Of a DNA stretch of 64,000 nucleotides, positions 492 to 59,692 are shown piece after piece. Under the pieces are notes generated by a model. That model worked only from the letters and a program-made list of their open reading frames with translations, was not told the DNA's origin and searched no databases. Made by a program: the position numbers and the translations under genes. Positions within the stretch are counted from its first letter, which is position 1; each line of letters starts with the position of its first letter. This DNA comes from Macrostomum hystrix (Eukaryota; Animalia; Platyhelminthes), in NCBI GenBank assembly GCA_950097015.1, contig CATNEN010000001.1:20770001-20834000 (forward strand), in the 5' to 3' direction.

Positions 492-1094
492 ACTGATAAT
501 ACGTGATGCTGACCACAGAGGTCCTCAGGAAACTGGTGTGAACTATTATTAGGGCCACTGGAACCCTTCAGCCTTCAATGTAACCTTGCAACTTCCACTG
601 GAACCCAACAGCTTCACTGGAACGATTTTGATCGAGTATCGAGTGTGTCCCTGGTTTTTCGTAGCCTTGCCGTAATAGTTAAAATTTCTTCACTGCAGTT
701 TAATGTAGTTTCACAAGTTCACATACCGATTTTAATCTTGATTTCAATTTGCTCTTTTAAGTGCCAGTTTTGCCTGTCGATACAGCAGCTGTTTTCACTG
801 CTTCCTTCACAGCAGGTCTTCAGACATTAATGGGTCCACCTCAAATAATATTTCAGGAATATATTTTCATAATCTCGCAAGTCTGCGCTAAACTACTTTT
901 TTCTTATTTTCGTTTCGAAACGAAATAAAAGTGTATAAACCAATCAATTTTTTCATACATTTTGAGTAGCTCACATACCTATTTCATTTCAATTTGAATA
1001 ACTTTTTGCAAATTGCTTGCATGACATGTGTGCTATATCAATTTGGTGTTTATCTGCTTCTTAGATTAGTAGGATAGAATGAATGCAGTAGACC

Positions 1095-2098
1095 ACTCCC
1101 CCTTCCTTCACACTCACCATCCTCCTCACTCCCCATCCTCCTCACTCCCATCCTCCTCACTCCCCATCCTCCTCACTCCCCATCCTCCTCACTCCCCATC
1201 CTCCTCACTCCCCATCCTCCTCACTCCCCATCCTCCTCACTCCCCATTCTCCTCACTCCCCATTCTCCTCACTCCCCATTCTCCTCACTCCCCATCCTCC
1301 TCACTCCCCATCCTCCTCACTCCCCATTCTCCTCACTCCCCATCCTCCTCACTCCCCATCCTCCTCACTCCCCATCCTCCTCACTCCCCATTCTCCTCAC
1401 TCCCCATCCTCCTCACTCCCCATCCTCCTCACTCCCCATTCTCCTTACTCCCCATCCTCCTCACTCCCCATCCTCCTCACTCCCCATTCTCCTCACTCCC
1501 CATCCTCCTCACTACCCATTCTCCTTACTCCCCATAATCCTCACTCCCATCCTCCTCAATCCCATCCCCATCACTCCCCATCCTCCTCACTCCCCATTCT
1601 CCTCACTCCCCATCCTCCTCACTCCCCATCCTCCTCACTCCCCATTCTCCTTACTCCCCATCCTCCTCACTCCCCATCCTCCTCACTCCCCATTCTCCTC
1701 ACTCCCCATTCTCCTCACTCCCCATCCTCCTCACTCCCCATTCTCCTTACTCCCCATAATCCTCACTCCCATCCTCCTCAATCCCATCCCCATCACTCCC
1801 CATCCTCCTCACTCCCCATTCTCCTCACTCCCCATCCTCCTCACTCCCCATCCTCCTCACTCCCCATTCTCCTTACTCCCCATCCTCCTCACTCCCCATC
1901 CTCCTCACTCCCCATTCTCCTCACTCCCCATCCTCCTCACTCCCCATTCTCCTTACTCCCCATAATCCTCACTCCCATCCTCCTCAATCCCATCCCCATC
2001 ACTCCCCATTCTCCTCACTCCCCATCCTCCTCACTCCCCATCCTCCTCACTCCCCATCCTCCTCACTCCCCATCCTCCTCACTCCCCATCCTCCTCAC
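1095..2098. repeat. 16-bp minisatellite (CTCCCCATCCTCCTCA)n
   Basis: Direct tandem repeat, pyrimidine-rich on the + strand, just upstream of gene A. Confidence 0.97.
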
Positions 2099-2343
2099 TG
2101 GCTGCACATCTGGCCAAGCCGTGTCTGTCCGGTGTCTCTTTGGTCAGTTTTTTCTTTTAGAATATAATATTTAATGAAATTGTGGAAAGTTCTCAATATT
2201 GACTAAGAATTCTCAAAAAAGCGAAGAAAAAAGTATTTTTTGCGCTGCCTGAATTCGCCCAATGCCTGAAAAGAAACTGCATTGTTCATGAAAGTCTCGC
2301 CAATGAATTGCGAATTTCAGCTGTCATTCCCAGCATAGCAACA

Positions 2344-5300
2344 ATGTTCCTGAATTGGTCGAGTCTTTTGCTCCAATTGACGATCGCATTGTCTTTCGCA
2401 TCTGCCGCATCAGTTTCCATGCAGCAGTCATCAGGTGAGCTCATTAGGCAGGCTTCTCAAGGCGTTGCCAGTTGTCAAGAGTTTCACTGAGATCGGTGAG
2501 CATTTTGCCTGGCCTCTCATTTCAGATGTCGATGAAGCTGAAGCCACATTGGCGAGGCTGAGGAGAGCCGCCTGCAGTGCTGGCGACTGCCAGAATGGAG
2601 GCTTTTGCTGGCCGGGTCCTGTGATTGGGAGTACGCCTCCGTGCCTGTGTCCTGAGGGCTACACTGGCGCCTACTGCACTGTTAATCCTAGTGCAGTGGA
2701 CTACTGCGCACCTGGACCAGCCCCACCCTGCAAAAACGGAGCCACCTGCAACCGAATCGCCGTCAGTCCCTTCTACAGCTGCAGCTGCGTTCCCGGATTC
2801 ACAGGTAAAAACATAGATATTAAAGCAATATCTGTTTCAATCGTGCTTTAATATCTGTGGGTAAAACAATAGTTTCATTAAGCAATAGATAAATATTATC
2901 AAGATGCTAAAAGTCAATAACAGTTAAAATTTATGAATTGCTAATAATTTTCCTTATTTGCGAACATAAAAATGCATTTGTTGAGAAAGACAGTAAAGCC
3001 CTGTGTTCGATTGATTAAACTTGTTAAGCAAACGCCGTTGGGCAAAGCTGTGATGGATCAAATTTATTTTTTATGCATATCACAAAGTACACTGAACTTG
3101 GATTATCCTTACTTCTAGGAAAAACAGTGATATAAACAGGAATTAACTAGCATATTGGAAAGACAAAAGGTTAGACTCGGAGCGGCTGAGGTTGGAGGCT
3201 AGAGTGAGGATAGGAGAGCAGTTGGGTTGCACTCAGGATGGTAGGTATACTCAGGAGGTAGAGTATCTAGGGTAGAATGAGAAGGGTAGAGTGAGGAGGG
3301 TAGAGTGAGGAGGGTGGAGTGAGGAGGGTAGAGTGAGGAGGGTAGAGTGAGGAGGGTAGAGTGAGGAGGGTAGAGTGAGGAGGGCAGAGTGAGGAGGGTA
3401 GAGTGAGGAGGGTAGAGTGAGGAGGGTAGAATGAGGAGGGTAGAGTGAGGAGGGCAGAGTGAGGAGGGTAGAGTGAGGAGGGTGGAGTGAGGAGGGTAGA
3501 GTGAGGAGGGTAGAGTGAGGAGGGTAGAGTGAGGAGGGTAGAGTGAGGAGGGTAGAGTGAGGAGGGTAGAGTGAGGAGGGTAGAGTGAGGAGGGTAGAGT
3601 GAGGAGGGTAGAGTGAGGAGGGTAGAGTGAGGAGGGTAGAGTGAGGAGGGTAGAGTGAGGAGGGTAGAGTGAGGAGGGTAGAGTGAGGAGGGTAGAGTGA
3701 GGAGGGTAGAGTGAGGAGGGTAGAGTGAGGAGGGTAGAATGAGGACGGTAGAGTGAGGAGGGTAGAGTGAGGAGGGTAGAATGAGGAGGGTAGAGTGAGG
3801 AGGTAGAGTAGAGAGGGTAGAGTGAGGAGGGTAGAGTGAGGAGGGTAGAGTGAGGAGGGTAGAGTGAGGAGGGTAGAGTGAGGAGGGTAGAGTGAGGACG
3901 GTATAGTGAGAATCCTCTGAGATTTTGAATCAACTTTGTGCATATTTAATTAATCCACTGAGTTGTTTGCACTGTTTATTGCTTTAACACTGGCATTCAT
4001 CAACAGTTTCACTAAAATGGTTATATTGCTGAGTTTTTTGAGTCATATAAAGCATTGAAAGTTTTACTGTATTTCACGCTCATTTTAAAGGCCGATGAAA
4101 TTTTCGCTTATTATTATTAGATTTCGCAGGACACGTTGACCCTCGACTGATTATAACGAGGCGGCATTTTGTTCGAATTAAGTCAGTTAGACTAAGAAAT
4201 TTGCCGGATACGGATACGAAATTAGTGAATTCATCCCAGATAGGCAAAAAGCCAATTTCAGCTTGAAATATGAAAATCATGTAAAGATTTTAAACAACCG
4301 CAGGCGACCACTGCGACAACATCGACGACTGTGCCAGCCGGCCCTGCATCAACGGGGGCCGTTGTGTGGATGGCAACAGAACGTGAGTTTGCTTTCGTGT
4401 TTATTTGATACTGAGAGCCGATATAACACTTTTTCTATTTATTATCTATTCATTTCCAGATACACCTGCGACTGCTCAGGCCTGGGATTCAGCGGCTCCA
4501 GGTGCGAAATCAACATCAACGACTGCGCCAGCCATCCCTGCACAAACGGTCTGTGTTCGGACCTCGTGAAGGACTACAACTGCAGCTGCTACAGAGGCTG
4601 GGAGGGCTTCAACTGCTCAATCGACACAAACTACTGCCTGTCGTCGCCCTGCCTGAATGGAGGCCTGTGCAGCGATGGCAACTCCACGTGAGGATCTCAA
4701 AGCACAAAAATCACAAATGCGTGAATTTCATTTTATTTATTACAATTCTTTGCATCTTCGTTGAAGGTTCAGCTGCAACTGCTCTCAGATCGATTTTGAA
4801 GGCCCCACGTGCAGCTCAAAGATCGATGACTGTCTTAGAAGTCCCTGTCAGAATGGCGGCAGGTGCATCGACGACCTCAGAAACTACTCATGTGACTGCT
4901 CCAGCATCGACTTCTATGGGCGGAACTGTCAATCCCGAATTATTGACGACTGCTCGCCGAACCCGTGCAGGAACGGAGCCGCCTGCGTTGATGAGCTCAG
5001 AGGCTACACCTGCAGCTGCTATGCTGGCTACTCAGGAAAGAACTGCTCAATTGATTTCGTCGACTGCCCGCCAAACAACTGCCATTTCGGTGGTATCTGC
5101 TTGGAGCGCAGCAACCAAGCACTGTATGAAAACTCCGCCCTTCCAGCTCCGTTCAACGGAAGCTTCAGCTACGCACGGGCAGCCGGATTCGTCTGCATCT
5201 GCCTTGCTGGCAAGTCGCGTCTTTTCAAATTAAAAAAATAAGCGCTCACACAGATCACACTGCATCTCCGGAACCCGCAGGATCCTTCGGTCCAACATGC

Positions 5301-8300
5301 TCAGTGAACCCGGACGACTGCGTGCTGCCCGGCACCAACCAGAGCGTGTGCGCTCACGCCTCGAGCTGCACGGACGGCCTGGCCTCATTCACCTGCCACT
5401 GCCTGCCCGGATATGAGGGCGCCAACTGCAGCCGAGAAATCGACGAGTGCCACGCGCTGCCCCCGCCGTGTCCCTCCGGAGCGACCTGCATCGACCGGCT
5501 GGCGGATTTCGAGTGCGCAAACTGCCCCGCCGGACTGGGCGGCAGGAAGTGCTCGGTTCCGCTCACCGGCTGCAACTCCAGGCCGTGTGAGAACAATGCC
5601 AGCTGCGAACCGGTCCTCGTGAGCGAATTCCCCACACCTGTTCACGACTACCGGTGCCGCTGCAACACAGATTGGGGAGGTCGTGACTGCAGCTCTTCAA
5701 CCCTGGTCTCATTCAACGGCTCCTCTAGCTTCAGCGCCCTGCTCAGCATCGGAGCCTCGAGCAGCTCGGCTGACTGGACCTTCGAGCTCTCATTCCGGAG
5801 CAGTCTCACCCAGTTCGATCTGATTCGGCTGTCCTCAGACTCGGGACTCATCCGAGTCGGTGCTCACAACTCCAGCCTCGTGCTGCTGCTGCTGAATAGC
5901 AGCTCATCGTCTGTGATTGGTCAGACCAAGTGGCCAATCAGTGACAGTCTGGCTGCTGCTGATTGGCTCACACTGTCAGTCAGCCTGACCAATGGCAGTG
6001 CGACACTGACTCGGACGGGGTCGTCAGGAGTGAGGCAGTCTCTCACACAGCTGGTTGACGGACTGTCGCACACATTCAAGCGAGGCTCTGTGTCAGTTCG
6101 GGTCGGAGGCGACGCAGCATCGACCAGTGGCGGCTTCCGCGGCTGCGTGCGGGATCTGCGACTCGCGACTTCCAACTTGACATTCGTCGCCATGGAGACC
6201 ACTGTTGAGTCGAGCAACGCGACCTGGGGAGTGTGCAGTCGATCCGTGCAGTGCGGCAGCCCATCGCCCTGTGAGCTGAGCACGAGCTCGAGGTGCTTGG
6301 ATGTGTGGAATGACTTTGTGTGCCAGTGCGCAGCGGACTTTGGTGGCCGCAACTGCTCTGTGCGGCTTCCGTCGTTCTCATTCGGACTGGGTGGCAAAGC
6401 GTCCTCAGCAAGCTTCGAGTCAGTGCCCGCCGTCTCAAGCGTGTTCGGTGGCGACTCATGGACAACCGAGCTGAGGCTGGTGACTCTGTCTCCGGGAGCG
6501 TTTCTGATGTTGCTGGGCGACCCGAGCGACTCGGCGACCACTCCGCGACTGCTCGTCACGGTGAGTGAGCTACACAGATTTTCCAAAAAGGTACTGGTGT
6601 GTGGTCTGTGATCGGTCAATGTCTTTCTGCTCTGAATCTTTCTTTCTTCAGATCGGTCACACGGGCCGTCTCTCCGCTCAGTTTCTGCTTAGCAACGGAT
6701 CCCAAATCGCAGCGTTGACGTCCTCGGACTCGGTAGCCACTGGTCGGTTTGTTTCCGTTAAGATCTACTTGTCCGTTTCAAGTCGCGAGATGTCGCTGAC
6801 ACTGGATTCGTCTGCGAAGTCGGCATTTCTGAGCAGTTCGCTTTCCTTGTCGCAGCCTTCGGGTCAGCTCATAATCGGCGGCTTCAGCGGAGCCCGAGCT
6901 TTGAGCTCGTATATCGGAAGTTCCGGCAGGAAAAGGAGATCTGTTCCAGGCTTGCCAGCGAGTATTGTATCGAGCATGTCAGAAAACCTAACCGCCTTTC
7001 AAGGCGTCATTTCTGCTCCCAAGCTAAACGGTGATTTGCCGCTGATTTTGGGTCCTGTGACGTCCAGCTTGATCAGCAGCCTGCCAGAAGCTGTCGTGGC
7101 CAGCGAGTCTGCGGGAGTCACGGCTGGCTCTGTCACCGCGAACATCTGCGAAAACTCAAATCCGTGCAAGAACGGCGCCACCTGTTCGAACGTGTTTTTC
7201 AACTCTTACTCGTACGAGCATTGTATTGATGAGAATAATGAAATTGGTGAGTTATTTATTACCATGTCATTCAATTTCACTTGCCAGGTGCCGTTGTCAT
7301 GATGGCTTCAGCGGCGCCGACTGCGCAATCGACTTTCCCGACTGCCGCGAGAACCCTTGCAACAATGGCGAATCGTGTTTGGAGAAGAGCGACTTGTCGC
7401 TGTATAACAGCACATTTCTGCCGCAACCTTTCAATGAATCGTTTCGCTTCGCATCCGCCAGTGGATTCGTGTGCGTCACGCCATTTGGTGAGCGATTGCA
7501 TCACCAATCACCTGTAGCACCTGATTATTTGTACTCCAGATATGCTATATGCTGAACTGCTTTGAAATGCTTTTACCCGACCTTCCAGTTCTGGCGAAAA
7601 CAAGACCTGGGACCTCTGACGAAAGTCAGTTTTTTGGCAGCCCTGCGTTTGCCGTGTCTGTCATTCTCTTCATTCTCAGCTTTGTTCTGGCAACAATTTC
7701 CATCGTCCTGTTTTTCAACCGACAAAAGGTATGAGCACCGTCCTGACTGCTTAAAAATAATCTTGACATCTCAGTGTCTAATCTCAGTGTCTAATCTCAG
7801 TGTCTAATCTCAGTGTCTAATCTCAGTGTCTAATCTCAGTGTCTAATCTCAGTGTCTAATCTCAGTGTCTAATCTCAGTGTCTAATCTCAGTGTCTAATC
7901 TCAGTGTCTAATCTCAGTGTCTAATCTCAGTGTCTAATCTCAGTGTCTAATCTCAGTGTCTAATCTCAGTGTCTAATCTCAGTGTCTAATCTCAGTGTCT
8001 AATCTCAGTGTCTAATCTCAGTGTCTAATCTCAGTGTCTAATCTCAGTGTCTAATCTCAGTGTCTAATCTCAGTGTCTAATCTCAGTATCTAATCTCAGT
8101 GTCTAATCTCAGTGTCTAATCTCAGTGTCTAATCTCAGTGTCTAATCTCAGTGTCTCATCTGAGTGTCTTATCTCATTGTCTAATCTCAGTGTCTAATCT
8201 CAGTGTCTAATCTCAGTGTCTAATCTCAGTGTCTAATCTCAGTGTCTAATCTCAGTGTCTAATCTCAGTATCTAATCTCAGTGTCTAATCTCAGTCTCTA

Positions 8301-11930: not shown

Positions 11931-12399
11931 GATTTTCAAGTCAGTCATTTTGAAGCTGATGAGAATGAGCTCATCTTCTGATGCTTTGAACATTGCTGCT
12001 TGGTAACCGAATAAGTATGTGATGATGTCCCGAATTAGCAAAAAATATTTTTAAGTCAAGGTTGACATGAAAAACACGCAATACTTTTAAACAACCTCAG
12101 GCTACAACTGCGAAATCAACATCGACGACTGCGCCAGCCGGCCCTGCATCAACGGCCAGTGCACAGACCTGGTGAACAGCTACAACTGCAGCTGCTACAG
12201 CGGCTGGGAGGGCTCCAACTGCGGCACCAACCATGACGACTGCTTCGCTGGCGCCTGTGTCAACGGAGGTCGTTGTGTGGACGGCAACGGAACGTGAGGG
12301 CGGTTCATATCTGATTGCACTATCAAACTATTACAAGAGTATATGTCTGGGTACGCATTCGAAATAGTAGTGGCTACAATCCATGGAAATTCTGGCAAA

Positions 12400-15354: not shown

Positions 15355-17362
15355 AATCCCATCCTCCTCACTCCCCATCGTCCTCACTCCCCATCCTCCT
15401 CACTCCCCATCCTCCTCACTCCCCATCCTCCTCACTCTCCATCCTCCTCACTCCCCATTCTCCTCACTCCCCATTCTCCTCACTCCCCATCCTCCTCACT
15501 CCCCATCCTCCTCACTCCCCATCCTCCTCACTCCCCATCCTCCTCACTCCCATTCTCCTCACTCCCCATCCTCCTCACTCCCCATCCTCCTCACTCCCCA
15601 TCCTCCTCACTCCCCATCCTCCTCACTCCCCATTCTCCTCACTCCCCATCCTCCTCACTCCCCATCCTCCTCACTCCCCATCCTCCTCACTCCCATTCTC
15701 CTCACTCCCCATCCTCCTCACTCCCCATCCTCCTCAATCCCATCCTCCTCACTCCCCATCGTCCTCACTCCCCATCCTCCTCACTCCCCATCCTCCTCAC
15801 TCCCCATCCTCCTCACTCCCCATCCTCCTCACTCTCCATCCTCCTCACTCCCCATTCTCCTCACTCCCCATTCTCCTCACTCCCCATCCTCCTCACTCCC
15901 CATCCTCCTCACTCCCCATCCTCCTCAATCCCATCCTCCTCACTCCCCATCGTCCTCACTCCCCATCCTCCTCACTCCCCATCCTCCTCACTCCCCATCC
16001 TCCTCAATCCCATCCTCCTCACTCCCCATCGTCCTCACTCCCCATCCTCCTCACTCCCCATCCTCCTCACTCCCCATCCTCCTCACTCTCCATCCTCCTC
16101 ACTCCCCATTCTCCTTACTCCCCATTCTCCTTACTCCCATCCTCCTCAATCCCGTTCTCCTCACTCCCATTCTCCTCACTCCCCATACTACTCACTCCAA
16201 TCCTCCTCATTCAAATCCTCCTCCCTCCCCATCCTCCTCACTCCCCATACTACTCACTCCAATCCTCCTCATTCAAATCCTCCTCCCTCCCCATTCTCCT
16301 CACTCCCCATACTACTCACTCCAATCCTCCTCATTCAAATCCTCCTCCCTCCCCATCCTCCTCACTCCCCATCCTCCTCACTCCCCATCCTCCTCACTCC
16401 CCATCCTCCTCACTCCCCATCCTCCTCACTCCCCATCCTCCTCACTCCCATTCTCCTCACTCCCCATCCTCCTCACTCCCCATCCTCCTCACTCCCCATC
16501 CTCCTCACTCCCCATCCTCCTCACTCCCCATCCTCCTCACTCCCCATCCTCCTCACTCCCCATCCTCCTCACTCCCCATTCTCCTTACTCCCCATTCTCC
16601 TTACCCCCATCCTCCTCACTCCCTATCCTCCTCACTCCCCATCCTCCTCACTCCCATTCTCCTCACTCCCCATCCTCCTCACTCCCCATCCTCCTCACTC
16701 CCATTCTCCTCACTCCCCATCCTCCTCACTCCCCATCCTCCTCACTCCCCATCCTCCTCACTCCCCATCCTCCTCACTCCCCATCCTCCTCACTCCCCAT
16801 CCTCCTCACTCCCCATCCTCCTCACTCCCCATTCTCCTTACTCCCCATTCTCCTTACTCCCATCCTCCTCAATCCCGTTCTCCTCACTCCCATTCTCCTC
16901 ACTCCCCATCGTCCTCACTCCCCATCCTCCTCACTCCCCATCCTCCTCACTCCCCATCCTCCTCACTCTCCATCCTCCTCACTCCCCATTCTCCTTACTC
17001 CCCATTCTCCTTACTCCCATCCTCCTCAATCCCGTTCTCCTCACTCCCATTCTCCTCACTCCCCATACTACTCACTCCAATCCTCCTCATTCAAATCCTC
17101 CTCCCTCCCCATTCTCCTCACTCCCCATACTACTCACTCCAATCCTCCTCATTCAAATCCTCCTCCCTCCCCATTCTCCTCACTCCCCATACTACTCACT
17201 CCAATCCTCCTCATTCAAATCCTCCTCCCTCCCCATTCTCCTCACTCCCCATACTACTCACTCCAATCCTCCTCATTCAAATCCTCCTCCCTCCCCATCC
17301 TCCTCACTCCCCATACTACTCACTCCAATCCTCCTCATTCAAATCCTCCTCCTCACTCCCCA
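15355..17362. repeat. 16-bp minisatellite (CTCCCCATCCTCCTCA)n with higher-order variant blocks
   Basis: ~2 kb tandem array between gene B and gene C. Confidence 0.97.
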
Positions 17363-18019
17363 TGAGACATGAGACATTAGAGACCTCGCCTTGATGCCCC
17401 TGGCCAGTTTCTGGTCGGCGTTCTATAACAACAATTTTTTGTCTCTATACAATGAAAACTACCCGTTTGTCTGTTTGCAACACGGGGTGCTTGCGGCCAC
17501 CCGATCTTGTTGCTTATTCTGGACAAGGGTGTGTCATGAGTCATTGCTTTCACAGGCTGTTTCTCAGCTGATGTTTTTTATAACGAGTTGCTATTCCTGG
17601 ATGCAGCGATACACTCGTTTCTTTAGAAAAATACTTTATTTGCAGTGGCTATTAATTTAGCTATTAATAGAAACATAACCTACTTCTTATGGTATTTATA
17701 ATTCTCACTTCATGTCTGACAGGTCCGAAAGGCCCTACCTTACCGCAGCTTTAACTTGTTATTTAATAAAGTTTTAGTCGGCACTCACACATCCATATCT
17801 CCGCCACTGCTACTGGAGCACCTGCTGACTCAGAGAAGGAAGACTGTCGTTTACTAGCAAACGTAAATTCCATTTGATTATTTTCAACAGGGGATATTGA
17901 ATGCTGATCCTGGAGGATTTTATTTGGAAGACATAGAGCCAACACTAATTGGCACTAATGCCAACATTAGTGCCCTGAAGTTCCAATGCTCTCTGTTCTG
18001 TAGTCGCTCGTCTGAAGGC

Positions 18020-18700: not shown

Positions 18701-21700
18701 ATGCAGCAGAGAACTCTGCAGGTCTGGCTCCTACTGACAATCTCATTGTCATGCACTTCTGCCGTGTCAGTACCGACTGAGCAGTCTTCAGGTGAGTTCA
18801 TTAGGCAGGCTTCTCAAGGCGTTGCCAGTTGTCAAAAGTTTCACTGAGATCGGTGAGCATTTTGCCTGGCCTCTCATTTCAGATGTCGATGAAGCTGAAG
18901 CCACATTGGCGAGGCTGAGGAGAGCCGCCTGCAGTGCTGGCGACTGCCAGAATGGAGGCGTTTGCTGGCCGGGCACTGTGACTGCGAGTACGCCTCCGTG
19001 CCTGTGTGCTGATGGCTACACGGGCACCTACTGCACTGTTATTGTTCCTGGTGCAGTGGACTACTGCGCACCCGGACCAGGGCCTACCTGCAAAAACGGA
19101 GCTACCTGCAACCGAATCGCCGTCAGTCCCTTCTACAGCTGCAGCTGCGTTCCCGGATTCACAGGTAAACAATCCCTTTGTCTATCCCTTTGTCCCTTTG
19201 TCTTTGTTTATCTATATACTCGTATTATTTTCATACTTAATTGGCGAATAGTATCTTTACAAATATATATTTATTTTCATTTCTATGTAATGCGAGTGCA
19301 TTAGGCGACAGAGAAAGTTTGGTTGATTATACTCGTCTTAAGCAATCTCTCGGACAAAGCTCTAATGGATCACGACAAATTTTCTATCACGAAAGTCTAC
19401 TAAACTTGCTAGCCGTCCTTATTCATACGAAAAATATTAATAGTAGAAGAATTAATGGAGCAAATAGGAAAGACAAAAGAAAATAGAACTGCTGGTTTGA
19501 AAGTACATTGTAAATTACATTGTAGAGTGTGGAGTTTCGGCTCAGGACGGTTGAAGAAGGAGGCTAGAGTGAGGATAGAAGAGGATAGACTGAGGAGGGT
19601 AGACTGAGGAGGGTAGACTGAGGAGGGTAGAGTAAGGAGGGTAGAGTGAGGAGGGTAGAGTAAGGAGGGTAGACTATGGAGGGTAGTGTGAGGCGAGTAG
19701 AGTGATGAAGGTAGAGTGAGGAGGGTAGAGTGAGGAGAGTAGAGTGAGGAGAGTAGAGTGAGGAGGGTAGGTTGAGGAAGCTAAACCAGGAGTGTTTCTC
19801 TGCTTAATGAATCAAAATTGCCAACCTAATTCAGCCAGAGCACCATTTCTGTGTGTTTAATTTGGACTGACTTGAAGTATCGATTAGCAGATCCTAAAAT
19901 TTCTGATCGGTAAGCTCTATTTGGCTCCTGCCCCAAGGTCCCAGTCTCCATGAAACGAAAGCTCCCCAGGCCTATGCAATTTTCGATAATGGCTGTGCAG
20001 AAAAAATGAAATTTCTGCGCTTCTCTGTCTGAAATGCCGCTTGCTTTCTTAGGAGTTTATGTGAAACCTCTGTGATCGCTGCACAGAAGTCTGTGTTCTT
20101 TTTGAGTGGACATTGCAGATCAGAAGCCTTTTTTTCTTTATTGACTTCTAGCTTATGACTGTTGCAGAACTCTGCCACTTGTCAAGGCCGTTTTGCAATT
20201 CTGTCAGGTCTTCACCACAGATACGCGCTCGTATACTAGATAAATGATCACAATAAAACCAGATTGGTTGATAAATTGTGCCTAGCGGGTAACATGGACA
20301 ATAGCAATGGAGATAGGGGGCCGCCTTGCTTGAACCCCTTAGTGACTTGACAAGCCTCAGAGCTGTATATTCCTAAACACCACACCCCCAGGCACGAGAG
20401 CCGACACAGAAAATGCGGCAGAAAACGAGCTCGAAAACGAGACTGTCTATGGCCCAGACAGGATACATACAGTACTATTTGCACATAAAACAATTATAAT
20501 GCAGGAAATAGCAAAAACAATTTTACAACACGCAGCGCGAGATAGACACACTGGGCACATAGTGGGTACCCGCTTAGATAAACCCAGCACAAGGCGGTGG
20601 GGTGGGTGCCTGAGGTGGGTGTTTACACCCAATCAGCGAGTGTCGATTGGACACAACATGCTTTCTATAGTATTTAGCTCGCATGGTTGACTTTCAGCTG
20701 CTCTTTCACCGAGTGAGTAAGGTCTGGTGGTGAACCACGCAAAATTTGGCTTTTTTAGAATGTCATCTTTCTTAGAATTAAAATTAGTAGGGTTTCAATT
20801 AGATCGGCCACGTATATTACCACTGGACTAGCTGATTGTACAAGTAAGTTACGGGCTGTAATATTTATTTATTTATTTTTTGTAAATGAAGCAATCTTAA
20901 ATTCGGTGAAGCAACATGTTTTGCAAGATATATTAAAAAGACAGCATTAGATCTGCTTCCAATAAAGATTTATCAACATTTTATTGCGAAATACGTAAAA
21001 AGTTCCTATCTCGCTAGCGCATTTTTCTGTGAAAATCTGCCTTTAATAAATTTTCCAAGAAACGAAGTGTCCCGTCTTTCGTCTTCTAGTGATCCTTGTG
21101 TCGCCCTTGGCAATCAAGTGTTTGTTTTAAACCGCAGGCTACAACTGCGAAATCAACATCGACGACTGCGCCAGCCGGCCCTGCATCAACGGCCAGTGCA
21201 CAGACCTGGTGAACAGCTACCACTGCAGCTGCTACAGAGGCTGGGAGGGCTTCAACTGCTCAGTTGACACAAACTACTGCCTGCCGTTGCCGTGTCAGAA
21301 TGGAGGCTTGTGCAGCGATGGCAATTCCACGTGAGGCAAAAATGTTTTTTATTACTTCAAATTCGGAGTGACACGCAGTAATGTTTGTAATGAGAGGGTG
21401 GACTGAACAGCCGAAGGCAGTTTTCAGATGCGACGCGCGATAGTTGCGGCTGTGCCGTCGGCTGCACATCATGCACAATTACGGCAGGTGTAACAAATTT
21501 TTTATTAAAAAACCCGGAACAAATTAACAGTTTCACCTGCGACTGCTCGCGCATCGACTTCCAAGGCTACAACTGCAGCTCCAAGATCGACGACTGTCCT
21601 GGTAACAATTGTCAGAACGGAGGCCGCTGCGTTGACGGTGTCAGAAGCTACACCTGCGACTGTACAGACACGGGATTCAAAGGTGCCTTGTGCGAGACCA

Positions 21701-24700
21701 ACATCGACGACTGTGCCGGCAATCCCTGCACAAACGGTCTGTGCACGGACCTTGTGAAGGACTACAACTGCAGCTGCTACAGAGGCTGGGAGGGCAAGAA
21801 CTGCTCAATCGACACAAACTACTGCCTACCGTTGCCCTGTCGGAATGGAGGCTTGTGCAGCGATGGAAACTCCACGTGAGGATCGCAAAGCACGAAAAGC
21901 ACTATAGGGTGGACTGAATTGTGATTTTATACAATTCTGATCTCTGCATCTTCATTTCAGGTTCACCTGCGACTGCTCTCGCACCGATTTTCAAGGCCCC
22001 ACGTGCAGCTCAAAGATCGACTACTGTCTGTCAAGTCCCTGTCAGAACGGCGGCAGGTGCATCGACGGTGTCAGAAACTACTCTTGTAACTGCTCAAGCA
22101 TAGACTTTTCTGGGCCGAACTGTCAATCTCGAATTGATGACTGCTCGCCCAACCCGTGCAGAAACGGAGCCGCCTGCGTTGATGAGTTCAGAGGCTACAC
22201 CTGCAGCTGCGATGCGGGGTTCGGCAGCAAGAACTGCAGCGTCAGGCTGACCGGCTGCGACTCCGCGCCGTGTCGGAATACAGAAATCTGCGAGCCGGTT
22301 CTCTTGAGAGAGTTGCCGACACCTGAGCACGGACACCTGTGCACCTGCGCCCCAGGATGGACGGGCCCTAAGTGCAACCTCACAACCCTAGTCTCACTTA
22401 ACGCCTCCACCAGCTTCAGCGCCCTGCTCAGCATCGGAGCCTCAAGCAGCTCGGCTGACTGGACCTTCGAGCTCTCATTCCGGAGCAGTCTCACCCAGTT
22501 CGATCTGATTCGGCTGTCCTCAGACTCGGGACTCATCCGAGTCGGTGCTCACAACTCCAGCCTCGTGCTGCTGCTGCTGAATAGCAGCTCATCGTCTGTG
22601 ATTGGTCAGACCAAGTGGCCAATCAGTGACCGTTTGGCTGCTGCTGATTGGCTCACACTGTCAGTCACCCTGACCAATGGCAGTGCGACACTGACTCGGA
22701 CAGGGTCGTCAGGAGTGAGGCAGTCTCTCACACAGCTGGTTGACGGTCTTTCGCACACATTCAAGCGAGGCTCAGTGTCAGTTCGGGTCGGAGGCGACGC
22801 AGCATCGACCAGTGGCGGCTTCCGCGGCTGCGTACGGGATGTGCGACTCGCGACTTCCAACTTGACATTTGTCGCCATGGAGACCACGGTGGAGTCGAGC
22901 AACGCGACCTGGGGAGTGTGCAGTCGATCGGTGCAGTGCGGCAGCCCATCGCCCTGTGAGCTGAGCACGAGCTCGAGGTGCTTGGATGTGTGGAATGACT
23001 TTGTGTGCCAGTGCGCAGCGGACTTTGGTGGCCGCAACTGCTCTGTGCGGCTTCCGTCGTTCTCATTCGGACTGGGTGGCAACGCGTCCTCAGCGAGCTT
23101 CGCGTCAGTGCCCGCCGTCTCAAGCGAGTTCGGCGGCGACTCGTGGACGATCGAGCTGAGGCTGGTGACTCTGTCTCCGGGAGCGTTTCTGATGCTGCTG
23201 GGCGACCCGAGCGACTCGGCGACCACTCCGCGACTGCTCGTTACGGTGAGTGAGGACTGAACAATGTTTGTGGTTTCTAGCAGATCACATTTTCGTACAA
23301 TGCCTCGTTGTCCTTCCTCAGATTGATTCCACTGGATGTCTGTCTGCCCAGATTCTGCTTAGCAACGGTCTTCTGGTCGCAACGCTGACGTCCTCGGACT
23401 CTGTGGCTACTGGGAACTTTGTCTCTGTGAAGATCTACTTGTCTATTTCAAATCGCGTGTTGTCGCTGACAGTTGCGTCGGCTGTAAAGTCAGCATCGCT
23501 GAACAGATTGAGTCCTCTGTCGCAGCCGTCGGGTCAGCTGATCGTCGGTGGCTTCAACGGAGCACCGTCAGCCAGGTGGGGCAGATCGAAACGATCTGTG
23601 TCGGTCCTGCCAGCCAGCGTGGCCTCCGCTCTGCCCGCCGGTACGACTGCATTCTTTGGCCTGCTCGCTGCTCTTCGAATAAACGGTGACCGGCCTCTGA
23701 TTTCGGGTCCCGTATCAGCCAGCTCGCTCAGCAGCCTCACAGGTGCCATACCTGCCACTTATTCTTCTGGAGTTACCTTAGCAACGCTGGAGAACAATGC
23801 TTGCGCTGTTTATGAGCCTTGCAAGAACGGGGCCACCTGCTCAAATGTGTTTCTCAACTCGTACTCGTAAGTGATCTCCGATCTTTCATTGAGTGTTTCT
23901 GTGATCAAAATGAATGTTCCACAAAGAGCGAATTTCGAATCCAGCTGCCAATGCCACCCTGGATATTCCGGAACCAACTGCTCAACGGACTATCCCGACT
24001 GCCATGAGAAGCCGTGCGGCAGTGAGGAAGTGTGCTTGGAGAAGAGCGACCCGGTCAATTACAATATAAAGATTCTGCCACCGCCATTCAATGGAGCTTT
24101 CAGCTACGGGTCGGCTGCTGGATTCACCTGTGTAAAATCGTATGGTAGGACAACAGCAAGCTTTCATTAGTTCTTTGAAATGGCAAAGTATTTGATAACT
24201 GGCGACTTTGTGACGGTATCTACTGGTTTTATGAATCAATTCAAGAAAAAAATGTGCAAATACACTCTTTACCTATCCTACTCACGAACTATTGCAGGGT
24301 ATCGGAACAGCTTCACAGGCTCAGCCTCACAAACTAACAGCTTCACCACCTCAGCCGGATTCTATGTGATTCTTGTCGTGGTTTCTGCTGTTCTTTCGGC
24401 TGCCATCTCTATCTCAGTTATTTTTCTTCTAATTAGACATGTAAGGGTCGCTGCTTTCTTTCTTGCATTGCTTATTTTGAGTTGATAAAACACAACAAAT
24501 TCCTTTACAGGGTCACTTGGCAAGAAACCGTTCTGATGACTATACCAATCGATCGCTATCAGGACATCAACAGCAGGTGACTTGGTGATTTTATTTATCC
24601 AGAAATCATTATTCTCTGAAAATGCAATTCTGTTTCAACAAGATTCTTCGAATCATCTTAGAAGCGGACTGATGGAGGCTTCGATGCAACGGTTGATGCA

Positions 24701-24928
24701 ACTTATACTATTGCTGACCGGAACACTGTGCCTGTAAGTCAGTTTTCCACACCTTCGTCCTCAATTATTGCCTGACTCAAACATGCGTCGGTTGCTTTTT
24801 AGACAGCCGAAAACAGCTGTTTGACACCCAGCAGTCCGCCGGTTGCCGCAGCTGAACTTGTCGAAGATGTGTACGACACGACAATCGACTCAAACTATGC
24901 CAACATGGACCAGAAATACAATTGCTAG
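18701..24928 (+). CDS. Gene C: SP-10xEGF-LamG-EGF-LamG-EGF-truncated EGF-TM-Tyr tail ending YANMDQKYNC (~1115 aa)
   Basis: Exons 18701-18791, 18883-19164, 21138-21330, 21531-21875, 21961-23245, 23322-23866, 23945-24144, 24298-24440, 24511-24576, 24662-24733, 24803-24928 are all GT-AG and in frame (3348 nt). Confidence 0.88.
19565..19775. repeat. 14-bp G-rich minisatellite in gene C intron 2
   Basis: (TAGAGTGAGGAGGG)n, partly degenerate. Confidence 0.9.
20110..20385 (-). mobile_element. Decayed non-LTR retrotransposon (LINE) reverse-transcriptase fragment
   Basis: Minus-strand peptides VTKGFKQGGPLSPLLLS (RT 'QGxPLSPLL' motif) and LTELQNGLDK / AEFCNSHKLEVNKEK ('LQ..LD...FC...L.VN..K' motif), broken by frameshifts and stops. 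Confidence 0.7.
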
Positions 24929-25344
24929 ACAGTTTGGCGCGCCTATTTAATCCTGGTTTGGTGCATAACATCTTGGTTTGTGCCTTCATGACATCATGCT
25001 GTCGCGGTTTTTAGATTTTTTTATGTGTCTCAGTGTTTTTTGCGCCGTTTCAGTAACAACGTTTTTTGTCATGTTTTATAATTTGTAAAGAAGAAAAACA
25101 TATTTCATGTTAAAACAAAAAATCTTAACGGTTTAAAGTTTTATAACCGTTTTTTAGTAAACGTGATTAAGAGTAATATTTTTATTGTTCTTCGTGTTAA
25201 AAACTAGAATGACGTATTTCAAGAAAAATGTATTTGCTATCTATAAGCTTAAATTTGAGCTTCATTATTGCTCCAAGAAGTAAAAGTAGTTCAATCCTTT
25301 ATTCATATATATTTACTTTTTTAACATGGAATCTGGTTTGAAGT

Positions 25345-26312
25345 CCTCGTGAGTTTGATAGACACTCGTGTGTCTGATGGACCCTTGTGAGTTTGATGGA
25401 CACTTTTCTGTTTGATGGAAACTAGTATGTTTAAGGACACTCGTGTGATTGATGGAAACTAGTATGTTTAAGGACACTCGTGTGATTGATGGAAACTAGT
25501 ATGTTTAAGGACACTCGTGTGATTGATGGAAACTAGTATGTTTAAGGACACTCGTGTGATTGATGGAAACTAGTATGTTTAAGGACACTCGTGTGATTGA
25601 TGGAAACTAGTATGTTTAATGGACTCTCGTGTGATTGATGGAAACTAGTATGTTTAAGGACACTCGTGTGATTGATGGAAACTAGTATGCTTAATGGACT
25701 CTCGTGTGCTAGATGAACTCTCGTGTGCTTGATGGACACTCGTGAGTTTGATGGACACTCGTGTGTTTGATGGACACTCGTGTGCTTGATGGACTCTCGT
25801 GTGCTTGATGGACACTCGTGTGTTTGATGGACACTCGTGTGCTTGATGGACTCTCGTGTGTTTGATGGACACTCGTGTGTTTGATGGACACTCGTGTGTT
25901 TGATGGACACTCGTGTGTTTGATGGACACTCGTGTGTTTGATGGACACTCGTGTGTTTGATGGACACTCGTGTGTTTGATGGACACTCGTGTGTTTGATG
26001 GACACTCGTGTGTTTGATGGACACTCGTGTGTTTGATGGACACTCGTGTGTTTGATGGACACTCGTGTGTTTGATGGACACTCGTGTGTTTGATGGACAC
26101 TCGTGTGTTTGATGGACACTCGTGTGATTGATGGACTCTCATGTGTTTGATGGACACTCGTGTGTTTGATGGACACTCGTGTGTTTGATGGACACTCGTG
26201 TGTTTGATGGACACTCGTGTGTTTGATGGACACTTGTGTGTTTGGTGGACACTCGTGTGTTTGTTGGACACTCGTGTGCATGATGGACACTCGAGATTCA
26301 TGTGTGGACTCA
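25345..26312. repeat. 19-bp minisatellite (GATGGACACTCGTGTGTTT)n with 37-38 bp dimeric variant
   Basis: Tandem array downstream of gene C. Confidence 0.96.
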
Positions 26313-27990
26313 TGCCTGTGAGATGGATGCCATGAATTTTACATTGTCAAATTTTAGTTCTTACCAGCGAAGCGCTTTTCAAATATGTAAATAACTTTGG
26401 ATCCAATTTCAGCAGGGATTGGAAGCCGAGGGAGATGCCTGCGACTGCCTACTGACAGGACAGCGATAGCAGAATTGTCGCCGTCATTTGACGCCATCTG
26501 CCATGTGAGTGGCTAACAGGTGAATGAAATGTCACTCTAACAGAAACCTCACTCCATCTGAAGTGTCAATCAATCCTAAATATCAGTTTTTAATTGTCAC
26601 TCTGTTCGAAATATCATTCTATCAGATACTTCGCTCTATTGAACATGCAAATAGAAAATGAAATTCATCATTTTTTCCTTTAATCCATAGGAAATCCATA
26701 GTGTTTCGATTTGCACTTTTTTTACAAGCGACATTTATCGTCCATTCTAACACTAAGAATCTGAATTTTCTTTCAGTATATAATTTTTCAACAAACCTGG
26801 CATGCATTGTCAAAGAAGTTCAGAGTCCACCTGGGTTAGATTGGGTTAATTTATGATTTAGTTGCCATCTCCTGTTCTCAATGGCCTCGAAACCCACGGT
26901 AAAAGAGGTTGAGAGGTTGCCTGCTGCTGTGTCGCATTCTATATTTTATGTTCTGTTAAGTAAGTACCACATTCTGTACGACTGTAGTTGTGTTTCAGTG
27001 CTAATGCTGAGTCTTTCTCATGCTGAATTGGCAACTTATCCAGCTTTTGTTTTACTCGCCACATTAAATTCGCACCGAAATGTCTCTGGGTTGTGTGCTG
27101 CTGGCCAGAAAATGGGACAAATTGATGTAGAAATTAAGCTGGAGTATTTTGTGAGTGCATTGTTATCATGTCTACTTGTAGAATGCATACGTACACTATT
27201 AATGGTAATGCTGACCGTGTTAATTGCTTACCTAGTTTTGATCCCAGTACATTAAAAGCTCGTAGTTTGCATACATTTTGTGCCCATTGGAAGGTATTGT
27301 CATAACATCCGTAATTCTATTTATCTGCGCCCTTGTGCGTGTCAGACTCTGTAGACGACGCCATTGTGGACGACTACGTAGACTCTATTCTTCTATCTCT
27401 GTTATCTCGCGGCCCACTAAAACAAGCGAATGCTATGTGCTCAGCCAGCCAGTGGATTTTTAAAAGAACTCAGACTTTTACAATCCGAATAGAAATGCAG
27501 AGTTTCGCACAGCTTGCTTTTGTCTGTTTTGCAGCGGTCCAATTAAAACAGTGCTACATATTTTCTTGTCTCTACGACTTCCTTAATCTTATTTGGCATA
27601 GTCTGTGCAAAATCTCCCCGAAAGACAACAAATACCTTGAGACTCTCAGAGCAAGCTAATAATTAGAAGGGCCAAGCATAGCAACCTTGACGAAAGCGAC
27701 TTTATCGGCATCAAAAAACTCATTCGATTAGGTAAGTTGACATTTGTGATTACAGACACGGTTATCTACGGTTACAGACATTTTACAGACACAAACAAGT
27801 GCCTGTACCTGAGACCGATGATATATTGGAAAAGTGTGTATATGTGCAATTTTCTGTCACAAATAAAGTGCATCTCAAGCGACCAAGAAATGGGGAATAA
27901 ACCGGTAGCAATAAACGGTTTCTAACTAAATTAGAATTAAAATTGATAGGACTAGAAAGCACGGAGTTGAGAATCGACAACGCTTGAACT

Positions 27991-30900
27991 ATGCGGCCCT
28001 GTTACCTGAGGCCTGTGGTGCTACTGCTTGTTCTAACTGCTGCCTACAGCCTGCTTCCAGTGATCTACGCGGCAGCAGCGAGCCAGGTATTTACAGGTAA
28101 AAAGATGTTTGTGGAGCTTAATATCAATCCCTGAAACATCCCAACCCCTATGACATCCCAACCTCTGAGGCATCCCAATACCTGAAACTTCCCAATCCCT
28201 GAAGTTCCCAATCCCTGAAACTTCCCAATCCCTGAAACTTCCCAATCTCTGAAACATCCCAAACTCTGAAACTTCCCAACCTCTGAAACTTCCCAATCCC
28301 TGAAACTTCCCAATCCCTGAAACTTCCCAATCCCTGAAACTTCCCAATCCCTGAAACTTCCCAATCCCTGAAACTTCCCAATCCCTGAAACTTCCCAATC
28401 CCTGAAACTTCCCAATCCCTGAAACTTCCCAATCCCTGAAACTTCCCAACCTCTGAAACATCCCAACCTCTGAAACATCCCAATCTCTGAAACATCCCAA
28501 TCTCTGAAACATCCCAATCTCTTAAACCCTTCCCGATCGCTGCCCAAACTCTGAAACATCCCAACCTCTGAAACATCCCAATCTCTGAAACATCCCAACC
28601 TCTGAAACATCACAACCTCTGAAATATCCCAACCCCTGAAACATCTCAATCTCTGAAATATCCCAATTTCTGAAACATCTCAATCTCTGAAATATCCCAA
28701 TTTCTGAAATATCCCAACCCCTAAAACATGAAAACTTTCCTTAACACCCGAGCCCCTAAAACACACCTATTCATGACACTGCACACTGTACACTACAGCT
28801 AGACATTACAATCACCATGTAACCTGAACTCGCAGGCCTCAGTGAGAGTCTGGCTCTGTTATCTCGGCAGCGCAGTGCCCCCTGTGGCTCTTTCGATTGC
28901 ATGAACGGTGGGATTTGCAACTCCAGCGCTCCCAGCCCGGTGTGCACCTGCCCCAAGCCGTACACCGGAGACAACTGCAGCGCCGTGCAAAACTACTGCA
29001 ACAAACTGCAGCCCGAGATGAACATCACAGCACTGCCAGTGTGCCTGAATGACGCCAGCTGCACATCGACTGCAACGGACCCATTTTTCTCCTGCAGATG
29101 TACTAGTAACTATACGGGTGAGTTCACGGCGCTTAATTGTCAAACCCTTGAGCCTTCTCAAAGCCGTCTTACAGAGACCATAAAATGTTGATTCCCAATT
29201 TTCCTCTAATATCAGATGCAGAGAATGCATACTACTTGATGGCCCAAGATGATAATTTGGGACAGAAAATGTTGCTCAATACATTGTGGAGATTGACAAA
29301 ATTAGTGTTGGCTAAACCACTGCTTGGAAGAATGTGTTTAGTTACTTTTAATTAAATTATTTATTTATTGTTGCAATACATTTCATTTACATGTGATACA
29401 ATTACGAGTGCATATTCGCCAAAAAATACTTTTTTTAGTTTTGACATTTTCGTAAAATATCTCCAGGATAAATATTTTTAAATCCAAAGTAATATATTGA
29501 ATTCCATCACCTAAATTGCGTGCGACATGATTTTAGTAATAAAATTCTTTAAAAAAATCTTATTCAAACCGCACTATGGGGGTGAGTGACATTGCAGGCA
29601 ATTTGCACTCTACAGGGGGGTGGGTGGCAGAGGTCTAACGCATTTGCCTCTCGCTCCAAGGTTCCTAGGCTCGATTCGAGGCACATTTATTTTGGAGCGC
29701 AGCAGCGGAGAGATGGCTTGGAAGCTTGTCGTGCAATTTACGCCCTTGAGGGCCAGCCTCCAAGGCACAGTGCCTGACGATGAGAAAGTCAGGGCAGATG
29801 TACACACCTGTGTGAGTGTGTGCCTGCGTACAGTATCTGTGTGCGTGTGTGCCCATGAGCCAGCGAAATGAGCAGAATTGCCTACTCGCAGGCTGCGCTT
29901 CTACTTTCAATAAATAATGTGCCAGAGTACACACAAATATAAGCTTTTAAATATCATTATTATACCGCACTATAAAGAAAATGCTGGATATATTTTTTAA
30001 AGCCAATAAAATCCCTCCATAAATTCCCGAACTAAACTCACCAGGCCCAAGATGTGACACTGTCAACCTGTGCGCCTTCGCAAACCCATGCGTCAACGGG
30101 CAGTGCGAGGTCGCTTCCACCGGAGCCGAATGCCGCTGCTACACTGGCTGGGCCGGACCGAAATGTGATACAGACGTCGATTACTGCTCAACTGGGCCTT
30201 GCAAAAATGGCGGAAAGTGCATCGATGGAAACTCGACGTAGGCTTCATATTTTCTTTTATCGAATTTAAAATCCACGCGAGAAATCTTGAAGATTTAAGA
30301 TTCGGGTAAAGTTGAGAACTCGAGGACATTGCAAGGATGCAATCTACGTACCTCCGCGTCCACTGATGATTTATTAAATTTGCTCGATGAAGACACTCAC
30401 AGACAGAAGTCAAACTGATTGCAAAACGACCTACTCTGAATATTTCATTTTGACTCATATCTCGTGCATCTGTGTCAGATTCAGCTGCAACTGCTCAGCC
30501 ACGGACTTCTGGGGCACCAGCTGCACCAACTGGATCAACGACTGTCAGCCAGATCCCTGTACCAATGGCGCCACCTGTATTGACGGATTGAGAAACTTCA
30601 CCTGCAACTGTCAGGACGGCTACTCTGGAAGGAACTGCTCTGAGGATTTCCCCGACTGCAGCCCGAACCCTTGCGCCTTCAATGCCACGTGTCTGGAGCG
30701 CAGCAAGCGGAGCTTGTACGGCATCAGCTCGCTGCCCGCGCCTTTCAACGGCCAGTTTCGCTACTCCCAGGCTGCTGGCTACGTCTGCGATTTAGGTTAT
30801 GAGAACGGTGAGACATTTCTGGCTCCAGGTCGACAGGACGAGGTTTATACTGCTTTTTGAGATTTGCTTCAATTATCACGGTACTGTTTGTGCACTGTCT

Positions 30901-36900: not shown

Positions 36901-37303
36901 TACTGCGTGGCTGACGGTCTGTAAAATACATCGGTCTACGCTCTCACGAAAGAAACCGTGCTGCACCTTGACAGCGAACGTAAGCTTGTTCTGTCTGATT
37001 TGGGGTTGGCTTGACGAGGACGAGGACGCCAACTCTGCGTCGTTCGTGATAAGGTAAAAGGCGACCACAGCATCTGGGTCAGTACACGAGCCCGGGTTTA
37101 CCCAGGATTACCCCGCTCACGACATCATTATAAAGTCCCCACAAGATTTGATATATTGATTGCATTAACAGCCTCTGTGCCAACTAGTATACCGTCTGTG
37201 TTCGTAAATTTGTGATAAACTTTTTTCATACTCCAACTCACAGACCGAGAGCGAAGAGCTGTACGTTGAACCAGACAGCATTCATCTGACTGATCAGGAT
37301 ATT

Positions 37304-37336
<33 letters not shown>

Positions 37337-38202
37337 GTATGCGATTCCTTCAAGCTTTTTATTTTTGCTCTTACCCTTGCGGAGGAAAATAATCCCGTGC
37401 TTGCTAGCTAGAACTTTAGGGCGCAGAATCTCGATAGTCAGTAGCTAAACTAGTATTCTAAATTGTTAGAGTTTGGTTAGAATGCTGAATAAATTCCGGA
37501 CATTTCTGCAGCAGCTGTGTGTCTGCCTGTTTCAGCTGAGTGAGCTGTGCCCCATACGAAGTCGAAAACTCGAAAATTTGAAAATCCTTATTTTCGGGCC
37601 TTTATATATTGATTTTATCTACTAGTTGAGCTACCGTGCGGAAAACAAGACAAAATAAGAAACAGACAAGCGGCTGCTAAAATGTAGAGAAATTGTTCAG
37701 CGTTCTGCTGAAACAAACATGCTGACAGACACATTGCGACAGACACATAGCCTACAATGATCCGAAAAATGGTGTTTAACGAGGTGTTGGTTCTCCATCT
37801 TATATTCTGAGCTTCACCTTTGTCAAATGCCAGCCCGAGCCAGAGGCTGTCTACGTTGTGCCCGACAGCGCCCTAAGCCAGCCAATGGAGCTGCTTAATC
37901 AAGCGAACGGACCACCGCCGAAGCTGCCGAAGCCGAAACCCAGGGGCCAGCAGCAGCAGCAGCCCCCGACTGTGGAACTCAGTAGCCATCCAAACAACAG
38001 AGCTAGTCAACTGAATATTGTGGTAAGATGCTCAAACAAGACTGTCCAGGTTGTTGCACTCAGTTGCCTACAGCTGATCCGTGCTTAAAAGTATCCCTGA
38101 AACTTTAACAGCGCCAAGACACGGCAGCAAACAACGGTGAAGCCGGTGGAACAGAGGAAAACGAGTACGATGTGATTGACAATGCTCCGAATTCAGCGAA
38201 TG

Positions 38203-38246
<44 letters not shown>

Positions 38247-59550: not shown

Positions 59551-59588
<38 letters not shown>

Positions 59589-59633: not shown

Positions 59634-59692
59634 CTAATTTTCCTGCCAAAGCGCAGGTATTTGAGTTCTTATTCTGAAAAAATGTTTTTATA

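Follow-up and report, generated by a model that had tools for sequence, protein, structure and literature searches.

The stretch analysed here, hereafter the window, comprises 64,000 nucleotides (nt) of Macrostomum hystrix DNA (assembly GCA_950097015.1, contig CATNEN010000001.1, positions 20,770,001 to 20,834,000 of the forward strand) and holds part of a tandem array of genes encoding epidermal growth factor (EGF) and laminin G (LamG) repeats. A whole-genome search located eight copies, all on the forward strand and within ~110 kb of one contig. These copies were named P1, A, B, C, C', D1, D2 and E in map order, with neighbouring DNA taken into the analysis. Four of the eight lie inside the window, where self-comparison placed them at 2435 (A), 10795 (B), 18792 (C) and 41175 (C'). 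We read the start of these genes, on balance, as a gene-conversion island around an old, weakly constrained and reshuffled patch at the tip of the encoded receptors, within an array of at least eight tandem EGF/LamG paralogues.

The coordinates assigned to exons 1 and 2 and intron 1 of gene A in a preliminary description of the window proved exact. The module is laid out as follows, in window coordinates:

2345–2434, forward strand: exon 1 of gene A, with the ATG and a hydrophobic, signal-peptide-like stretch, ending in phase 1
2435–2525, forward strand: intron 1 of gene A, 91 nt, GT..AG, phase 1, near-invariant in seven of the eight paralogues
2526–2804, forward strand: exon 2 of gene A, 279 nt, with its donor GT at 2805–2806
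2526–2602, forward strand: invariant 5' part of exon 2 (codons 1–25), encoding a short pro-segment, RLRR and the first half of the first EGF (EGF1, C1–C2)
2603–2728, forward strand: variable core of exon 2 (alignment codons 26–69; 42 codons in A)
2729–2804, forward strand: near-invariant 3' part of exon 2, encoding the second EGF (EGF2) from C2 to just before C6
10780–11049, forward strand: exon 2 of paralogue B, with another intron 1 and other first codons; the acceptor at 10779/10780 was read by eye
18792–19164, forward strand: paralogue C, with intron 1 at 18792–18882 and exon 2 at 18883–19164
41175–41547, forward strand: paralogue C', with intron 1 at 41175–41265 and exon 2 at 41266–41547

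The peptide encoded by exon 2 consists of a short acidic segment, RLRR, a complete EGF, a linker of 12 residues and most of a second EGF, which breaks off after the fifth cysteine, the sixth being encoded in exon 3. The variable core spans the C3–C4 and C5–C6 loops of EGF1, the inter-EGF linker, where insertions and deletions occur, and the C1–C2 loop of EGF2; codon 26 (F or V) is the last residue of the EGF1 C2–C3 loop. Comparison of the copies bore out several earlier observations. A and C' have the same intron 1 sequence, from which C departs at two sites, and B resembles the others only from RLRR onward, its homology beginning at 10795 after an unrelated intron 1. The roughly 15 amino-acid differences reported between A and C', with the cysteines kept, were recounted as 14 substitutions plus one indel, with all cysteines present.

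Public sequencing runs, available as k-mer contigs, were used to assess copy number and splicing. An assembly artefact as the source of the copies was ruled out, as the shared parts had ~5.5 times the depth of single-copy DNA and the unique flanks were at single-copy depth. In the best DNA run, the single-copy flanks of gene A had a depth of 72–81 and the invariant parts 414–447. The copies are therefore real and were collapsed in the k-mer assembly. In two RNA-type contigs, X5 and X9, exon 2 follows exon 1 without the intervening sequence, which confirms that intron 1 is spliced. In X5 (744 nt, from another study of the same organism), a D-type exon 1 is joined to exon 2 and exon 2 to exon 3 (…YNCEINIDDC), so that the predicted introns are spliced and a D-type gene is expressed. 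This contig resembles D2 but has GACAAC at codons 67–68, where the reference D2 has GGGCCT, and this mosaic reflects either allelic micro-conversion or a chimeric contig. In X9 and X11, which carry two other organism labels, the 5' flank of exon 2 is the same or almost the same (identical over 2526–2624 in X9). As leads read by hand, they show additional replacements at codons 24, 26, 31, 33–35, 38, 42 and 44, together with linker indels.

Database searches were performed exon by exon. The exon 2 peptide matched the Pfam EGF family PF00008 over two stretches (E=3.2e-13; 50.1 bits against a cut-off of 21.5). The downstream open reading frames encode more EGF repeats and gave two weak Laminin_G_2 matches (E=5e-4 to 5e-3, below the Pfam cut-off), and a hydrophobic membrane segment is found at 7640–7715. 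The nearest database proteins were unnamed proteins of Macrostomum lignano (62–71% identity). A search for homologous proteins with the 92-residue exon 2 peptide within its own length band returned no matches, and a literature search found no paper on these Macrostomum receptor genes. Taken together, the genes are predicted to encode type I EGF/LamG membrane proteins, a naming that goes no further than Crumbs-like architecture.

The tetrapeptide RLRR (2555–2566) has the furin-type form R-x-[KR]-R by eye, lies two residues before the first cysteine of EGF1 and is invariant in the eight copies; RQRR occupies the same place in the M. lignano protein P0002. This suggests a pro-segment that may be cleaved. 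After removal of the signal peptide, and perhaps cleavage at RLRR, EGF1 would form the extreme N-terminal, membrane-distal tip of the protein, and the variable loops and linker would surround the EGF1–EGF2 domain junction, as in tandem EGF pairs. Paralogue-specific binding would be the natural reading of such a variable tip. The AlphaFold2 model of the exon 2 peptide, computed with an eight-row alignment, was too poor for surface mapping (mean predicted local distance difference test score 60.6, below 50 in the linker; predicted template modelling score 0.37), and a sequence search of the PDB returned only a generic EGF match (EDIL3, 4d90, E=5e-5).

Some of the variation falls on EGF signature positions. 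The PROSITE-type EGF signature, C-x-C-x(2)-[GP]-[FYW]-x(4,8)-C, places G or P, then an aromatic residue, behind C5. At this position in EGF1, read by eye, P1, A, B, C and E have GY, D1 has PY, and C' and D2 have TH. The C5–C6 loop of A (2651–2677; counterpart in C' at 41391–41417) reads C-P-E-G-Y-T-G-A-Y-C, which we take to fit the EOGT O-GlcNAc consensus C5-x-x-G-x-[ST]-G-x-x-C6. This consensus is gone in C', D1 and D2 (THLPPY, PYLPPY and THIPPY, respectively). The EGF2 motif C-K-N-G-A-T-C, which presumably fits the O-fucose consensus C2-x4-[ST]-C3, is kept in all copies.

Along the aligned copies, the mean pairwise p-distance falls from 0.66 upstream (nt −300 to −91) to 0.40 in exon 1 (nt −90 to −31) and 0.19 in its last 30 nt, reaching 0.016 in intron 1 and 0.004 in nt 1–77 of exon 2. 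It rises to 0.165 in core codons 26–69, drops to 0.027 in the last 76 nt of exon 2, and climbs to 0.50 in the first 40 nt of intron 2 and 0.65 in nt 41–240. The paralogues thus share an island of near identity of ~450 nt with a variable hole, and are otherwise unalignable outside coding sequence. Exon 1 comes in three types that hardly align, with only the last ~30 nt approaching the identity of the island. Over seven copies, intron 1 has five differences in all, each a singleton. Between A and C', the ~125 neutral sites of the intron and the synonymous flank should have accumulated ~17 differences and one was seen (Poisson P ~7e-7), an expectation based on the LamG-exon synonymous divergence of 0.138 by our own arithmetic. 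The island, at 1.6%, has also diverged less than the window's youngest segmental duplicates (4–6%, i.e. 94–96% identical).

Within the island, intron 1 and the adjoining coding sequence have changed at similar rates. Five changes in 91 nt of intron compare with one in 18 synonymous sites of the 5' flank of exon 2, which argues for recent copying as opposed to coding constraint or a functional element. Across the eight copies, this 5' flank contains no nonsynonymous and one synonymous change, and in the 3' flank the nonsynonymous divergence (dN) is 0–0.05 (Nei–Gojobori, 28 pairs). We favour ectopic gene conversion over a functional DNA or RNA element as the probable maker of the island.

The core behaves differently from these flanks. 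Of its 44 codons, 27 vary, and every cysteine is kept in the eight copies. Over the 28 pairs (Nei–Gojobori), dN is 0.04–0.35, the synonymous divergence (dS) 0.05–0.31 and their ratio omega 0.7–2.1, with P>0.2 throughout. A tree-free count based on a minimum spanning tree per codon gave 47 replacement and 13 silent events in the core (omega 1.17; binomial P=0.33 against neutrality), compared with 314:209 in four other exon sets counted in the same way (omega 0.37–0.61). The core has the higher omega (Fisher P=0.005), so constraint on it is significantly weaker than in the remainder of these genes. Silent changes per silent site are as frequent in the core (0.40) as in other EGF exons of similar sampling (0.37–0.41). 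This indicates that the core is about as old as they are, and that the oddity lies in its young neighbours. For A against C and C', dS is 0.17–0.19 in the core and 0.25–0.63 in matching EGF exons; the LamG exon has a dS of 0.03–0.14.

Site models M0, M1a and M2a were fitted with a home-made GY94 likelihood program (F3x4 frequencies, IQ-TREE topologies). For whole exon 2 on one tree, M0 gave omega 0.74 (P=0.25 against 1) and M2a exceeded M1a by a doubled log-likelihood difference (2ΔlnL) of 16.1 (P=0.0003). This last result was discarded as evidence, as the tree lengths of flanks and core are tenfold apart (0.2 and 2.0 per codon); forcing one set of branch lengths on unequal partitions is a known source of false positives. 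With separate trees for flanks and core, omega was 0.94 (P=0.79) and 2ΔlnL 3.9 (P=0.14). The core alone on one tree gave omega 1.26 (P=0.42) and 2ΔlnL 8.0 (P=0.018), with 63% of codons at omega 2.35, and the core in three blocks with their own trees (codons 26–42, 43–59 and 60–69) gave omega 1.16 (P=0.63) and 2ΔlnL 3.65 (P=0.16), with omega2 at 1.9 for 69% of codons. These tests involve only eight sequences, hence low power, and a patch chosen after its variability had been seen. Positive selection on the core is suggested, yet the signal is lost under recombination control, and such selection is neither shown nor excluded.

The diversifying selection on the tip proposed in the preliminary description was accordingly not established: dS is as high as dN, the very outcome that the description had named beforehand as speaking against it, and the site models, with recombination handled, no longer separated M2a from M1a after partitioning (P=0.14–0.16). 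What stood is that the patch belongs to the N-terminal, membrane-distal EGF pair and shows more amino-acid change than other exons; the part that did not is an excess of dN, which was never significantly above dS.

The core is a mosaic. In a four-gamete type test, 123 of 435 informative site pairs were incompatible, and the incompatibility was clustered by distance (pairwise homoplasy index-type permutation, P<0.0002). Codon 26 has T in P1, A, D1 and D2, and G in B, C, C' and E; codons 31 and 42 are common to P1 and C, and CTG at codon 43 to B and E. Codons 67–68 read GACAAC in B, C' and D1, and GGGCCT in C and D2. A divergent block at codons 44–59, THLPPYCVVANSNP in C', is common to C', D1 and D2; against E it shows 22 differences in 51 nt, at silent sites as well. 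There was no sign of templated import of this block from another locus in a genome search with the C' block, which matched only C', D1 and D2 and revealed no other donor.

Similar exchange is apparent elsewhere in the array, where patches of 200–370 nt at 96–98% identity connect paralogues that are otherwise 70–86% identical. Such short patches in diverged genes indicate frequent ectopic conversion in the array, over tracts a few hundred bases long. Candidate tracts of this identity class are:

5307–5671: candidate conversion tract shared with positions 20757978–20758342 of the same assembly (G000:C1)
4159–4519: candidate conversion tract shared with 62022–62379
12084–12298: candidate conversion tract shared with 43406–43620

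Two hallmarks of concerted evolution are therefore present, namely sharp switches in identity between paralogues and incompatible neighbouring sites.

The exon 1–2 module is also bracketed by minisatellites, which at gene A are:

1094–2099, forward strand: C-rich minisatellite upstream of gene A, 16-bp unit CACTCCCCATCCTCCT, ~63 copies
3269–3910, forward strand: G-rich minisatellite downstream of exon 2 of gene A, 14-bp unit AGGGTAGAGTGAGG, ~46 copies

The reverse complement of the G-rich unit is related to the C-rich unit, so that the two arrays bracket the module in inverted orientation. The same arrangement recurs at C (arrays at 15358–17363 and 19581–19778) and at C' (39867–40199 and 40651–40837 upstream, 42023–42774 downstream). 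Around A, C and C', the C-rich arrays have a 16-bp or 14-bp unit and the G-rich arrays a 14-bp unit. Judging from their position, these inverted minisatellites may promote breaks or local recombination. One array upstream of D2 is ~5.3 kb long.

A gene-conversion island around an old patch would account for these features as follows. The paralogues would be old, with promoters, most of exon 1 and introns past alignment, and repeated ectopic conversion would keep ~450 nt alike, a stretch that opens at the end of exon 1, takes in intron 1 and closes with exon 2. Within this island, ~126–132 nt encoding the EGF1 loops, the linker and the first loop of EGF2 would escape homogenisation. The escaped core would evolve with little amino-acid constraint beyond the cysteine frame (omega ~1.2) and be reshuffled between paralogues in short blocks. 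It might persist since its own divergence of 16–27% would block heteroduplex extension, since overwritten tips would be selected against, or both, and the tip would give each paralogue its own binding specificity.

Several points weigh against this account. Conversion would have to stop at both edges of the core in all copies. The flanks have been homogenised to within ~100 nt of the core in all eight copies; neutral tracts of 200–370 nt should often overwrite the core, so some force, be it selection or a barrier set by heterology, protects it. On its 3' side the island ends exactly at the exon 2 donor, which is more like constraint than a random tract end. The point estimates of omega2 are 1.9–2.4 for ~65% of core codons, and no conversion events were seen directly. 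Lastly, in the EGF that precedes LamG-1, the pair of residues following C4-x-C5 is different in each of the seven paralogues retaining the exon (NT, AP, SV, TA, TP, AE and GP). The corresponding codons are:

5664–5669: hypervariable dipeptide in A
22349–22354: hypervariable dipeptide in C
45624–45629: hypervariable dipeptide in C'
outside the window: hypervariable dipeptide in D1, E, F and G

The changes affect only first and second codon positions, with third positions and neighbouring codons constant. For this exon, M2a exceeded M1a by 2ΔlnL=27.3, with omega2=7.5 at 3.7% of sites, on a single tree with recombination not controlled. The homologous positions in EGF1 of exon 2 (codons 42–43) vary too. 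The nonsynonymous-only changes in this dipeptide suggest that EGF loops in these genes are indeed subject to positive selection.

A less likely but live alternative is that diversifying or balancing selection on the ligand-binding tip creates the variety of the core and keeps it against conversion, much as for the peptide-binding exons of MHC genes, synonymous sites in the core being raised by linkage. The survival of the core between two converted flanks and the hypervariable dipeptide in a second EGF of the same genes would fit such selection, as would a core omega 2–3 times that of the rest of the genes (P=0.005) and the better fit of M2a on the single core tree. Among the recent triplicates C', D1 and D2, moreover, core changes are nearly all replacements (4 nonsynonymous to 0 synonymous and 6.5 to 1.5), and the hand-read contigs of two other organisms vary at the same codons, all listed changes being replacements. 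However, dN did not significantly exceed dS in any of the 28 pairs, in the event count or under M0 (P=0.42–0.63 for the core), and the site-model signal waned once recombination blocks and rate differences were allowed. Core dS is not above that of other EGF exons either, and the patch was picked for being variable among only eight sequences.

More speculatively, the array might be a germline cassette system for receptor tips, in which swaps of loop blocks among at least eight paralogues would be anchored by homology in the invariant intron and exon ends and so give polymorphic mosaics kept by diversifying selection. Such a system could serve self/non-self, partner or sperm–egg recognition in a hermaphroditic flatworm, and the intron might also serve coordinated or exclusive expression. 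We give this idea a small chance of being right.

It is also unlikely that purifying selection on a DNA or RNA element (splicing or expression control, an internal promoter or a small-RNA target), with no copying involved, accounts for the invariance of intron 1 and both ends of exon 2. A conserved intron with an internal promoter is found in the var genes of Plasmodium, and here the invariance across seven to eight copies, the end of the island right at the exon 2 donor, and the identity of the 5' flank in X9 would be in keeping with such an element. That flank identity says little, though, since the X9-type organism is very close to A (one difference in 30 nt of exon 1). Rfam gave chance-level hits only, with no family matched, and the folding of the intron, the junctions and both flanks was ordinary (z −0.1 to −1.1; intron 1 z −0.5). 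Furthermore, the rate in intron 1 is close to that of the adjoining synonymous sites, as for recently copied neutral sequence, and B works with a wholly different intron 1.

Very improbable, finally, is a local mutational process that raised dN and dS in the core after homogenisation (clustered multinucleotide or templated mutation, or error-prone repair near the minisatellites bracketing the module): omega ~1, codons with two to three changes (e.g. GGC TAC ACT GGC GCC to ACG CAC CTT CCC CCC) and the distance between E and C' would suit it, but the codon 44–59 block is common to C', D1 and D2 by descent, core dS matches other exons so that an extra mutation rate is unneeded, the genome search found no donor or template, and there is no obvious mutational signature.

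The gene-conversion island has a close counterpart in the primate L/M opsin genes. In gibbons, the introns of these genes are homogenised by conversion while central exons are still divergent, and selection against overwritten copies has been argued for the exons beside the homogenised introns (PMC3213168). Both systems consist of tandem paralogues with an intron more alike than the adjacent coding patch, conversion sparing the functional difference. In the flatworm, however, there are at least eight genes, an island of ~450 nt and a protected patch of ~126 nt inside a single exon, and this patch is a mosaic with omega ~1, whereas the opsins have a few fixed tuning sites. The peptide-binding exons of MHC class I and II genes, KIR, KLRC and plant NLR genes (RPP8) similarly have a variable recognition patch of short exchanged blocks between conserved neighbours, with both dN and dS raised in the patch. 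They differ in that dN>dS is established for MHC but not, in tests on eight sequences, for the flatworm core, and in fold, which is an MHC groove or leucine-rich repeats in those families and EGF here. Crumbs (CRB1–3) and EYS share an ectodomain in which EGF repeats are interspersed with Laminin G domains, ahead of a single transmembrane segment. Unlike Crumbs, the flatworm array is a lineage-specific tandem expansion, and a coarse search through all forward frames of 154 kb surrounding the genes, made without modelled tail exons, found no ERLI-type tail (E[RK]LI-stop).

The array illustrates that a hypervariable patch beside invariant sequence can arise mostly from conversion sharpening the contrast, and not from fast protein evolution, and that a standard site test shifts from P=0.0003 to non-significance once recombination and rate differences are handled. 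Should population data show selection on the patch, these genes would form a compact, tractable invertebrate recognition family with tips diversified by block exchange. The dipeptide in the later EGF offers a second, cleaner target for selection tests, and Macrostomum permits RNA interference and transgenesis, which makes function testable.

The wider locus has been shaped by larger duplications as well. A segmental duplication of ~18–25 kb at 92–96% identity relates 22194–40145 of the window to 45469–64000. On the duplicated segment lie another EGF gene, the 3' portions of C and C' and several long minisatellites with repeat lengths of 19, 17, 20 and 37 bp, and its unit is found twice more downstream, at D1 and D2, with a period of ~25 kb. 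Distant relatives of the N-terminal EGF pair (39–45% identity) occur in the spacers between the array genes, at 28787–29119 and again near 52600–52875, and another is found on a different contig (G000:C38:9470279–9470533). One of these distant relatives reads LSRQRSAPCGSFDCMNGGIC and is nearer to the M. lignano form.

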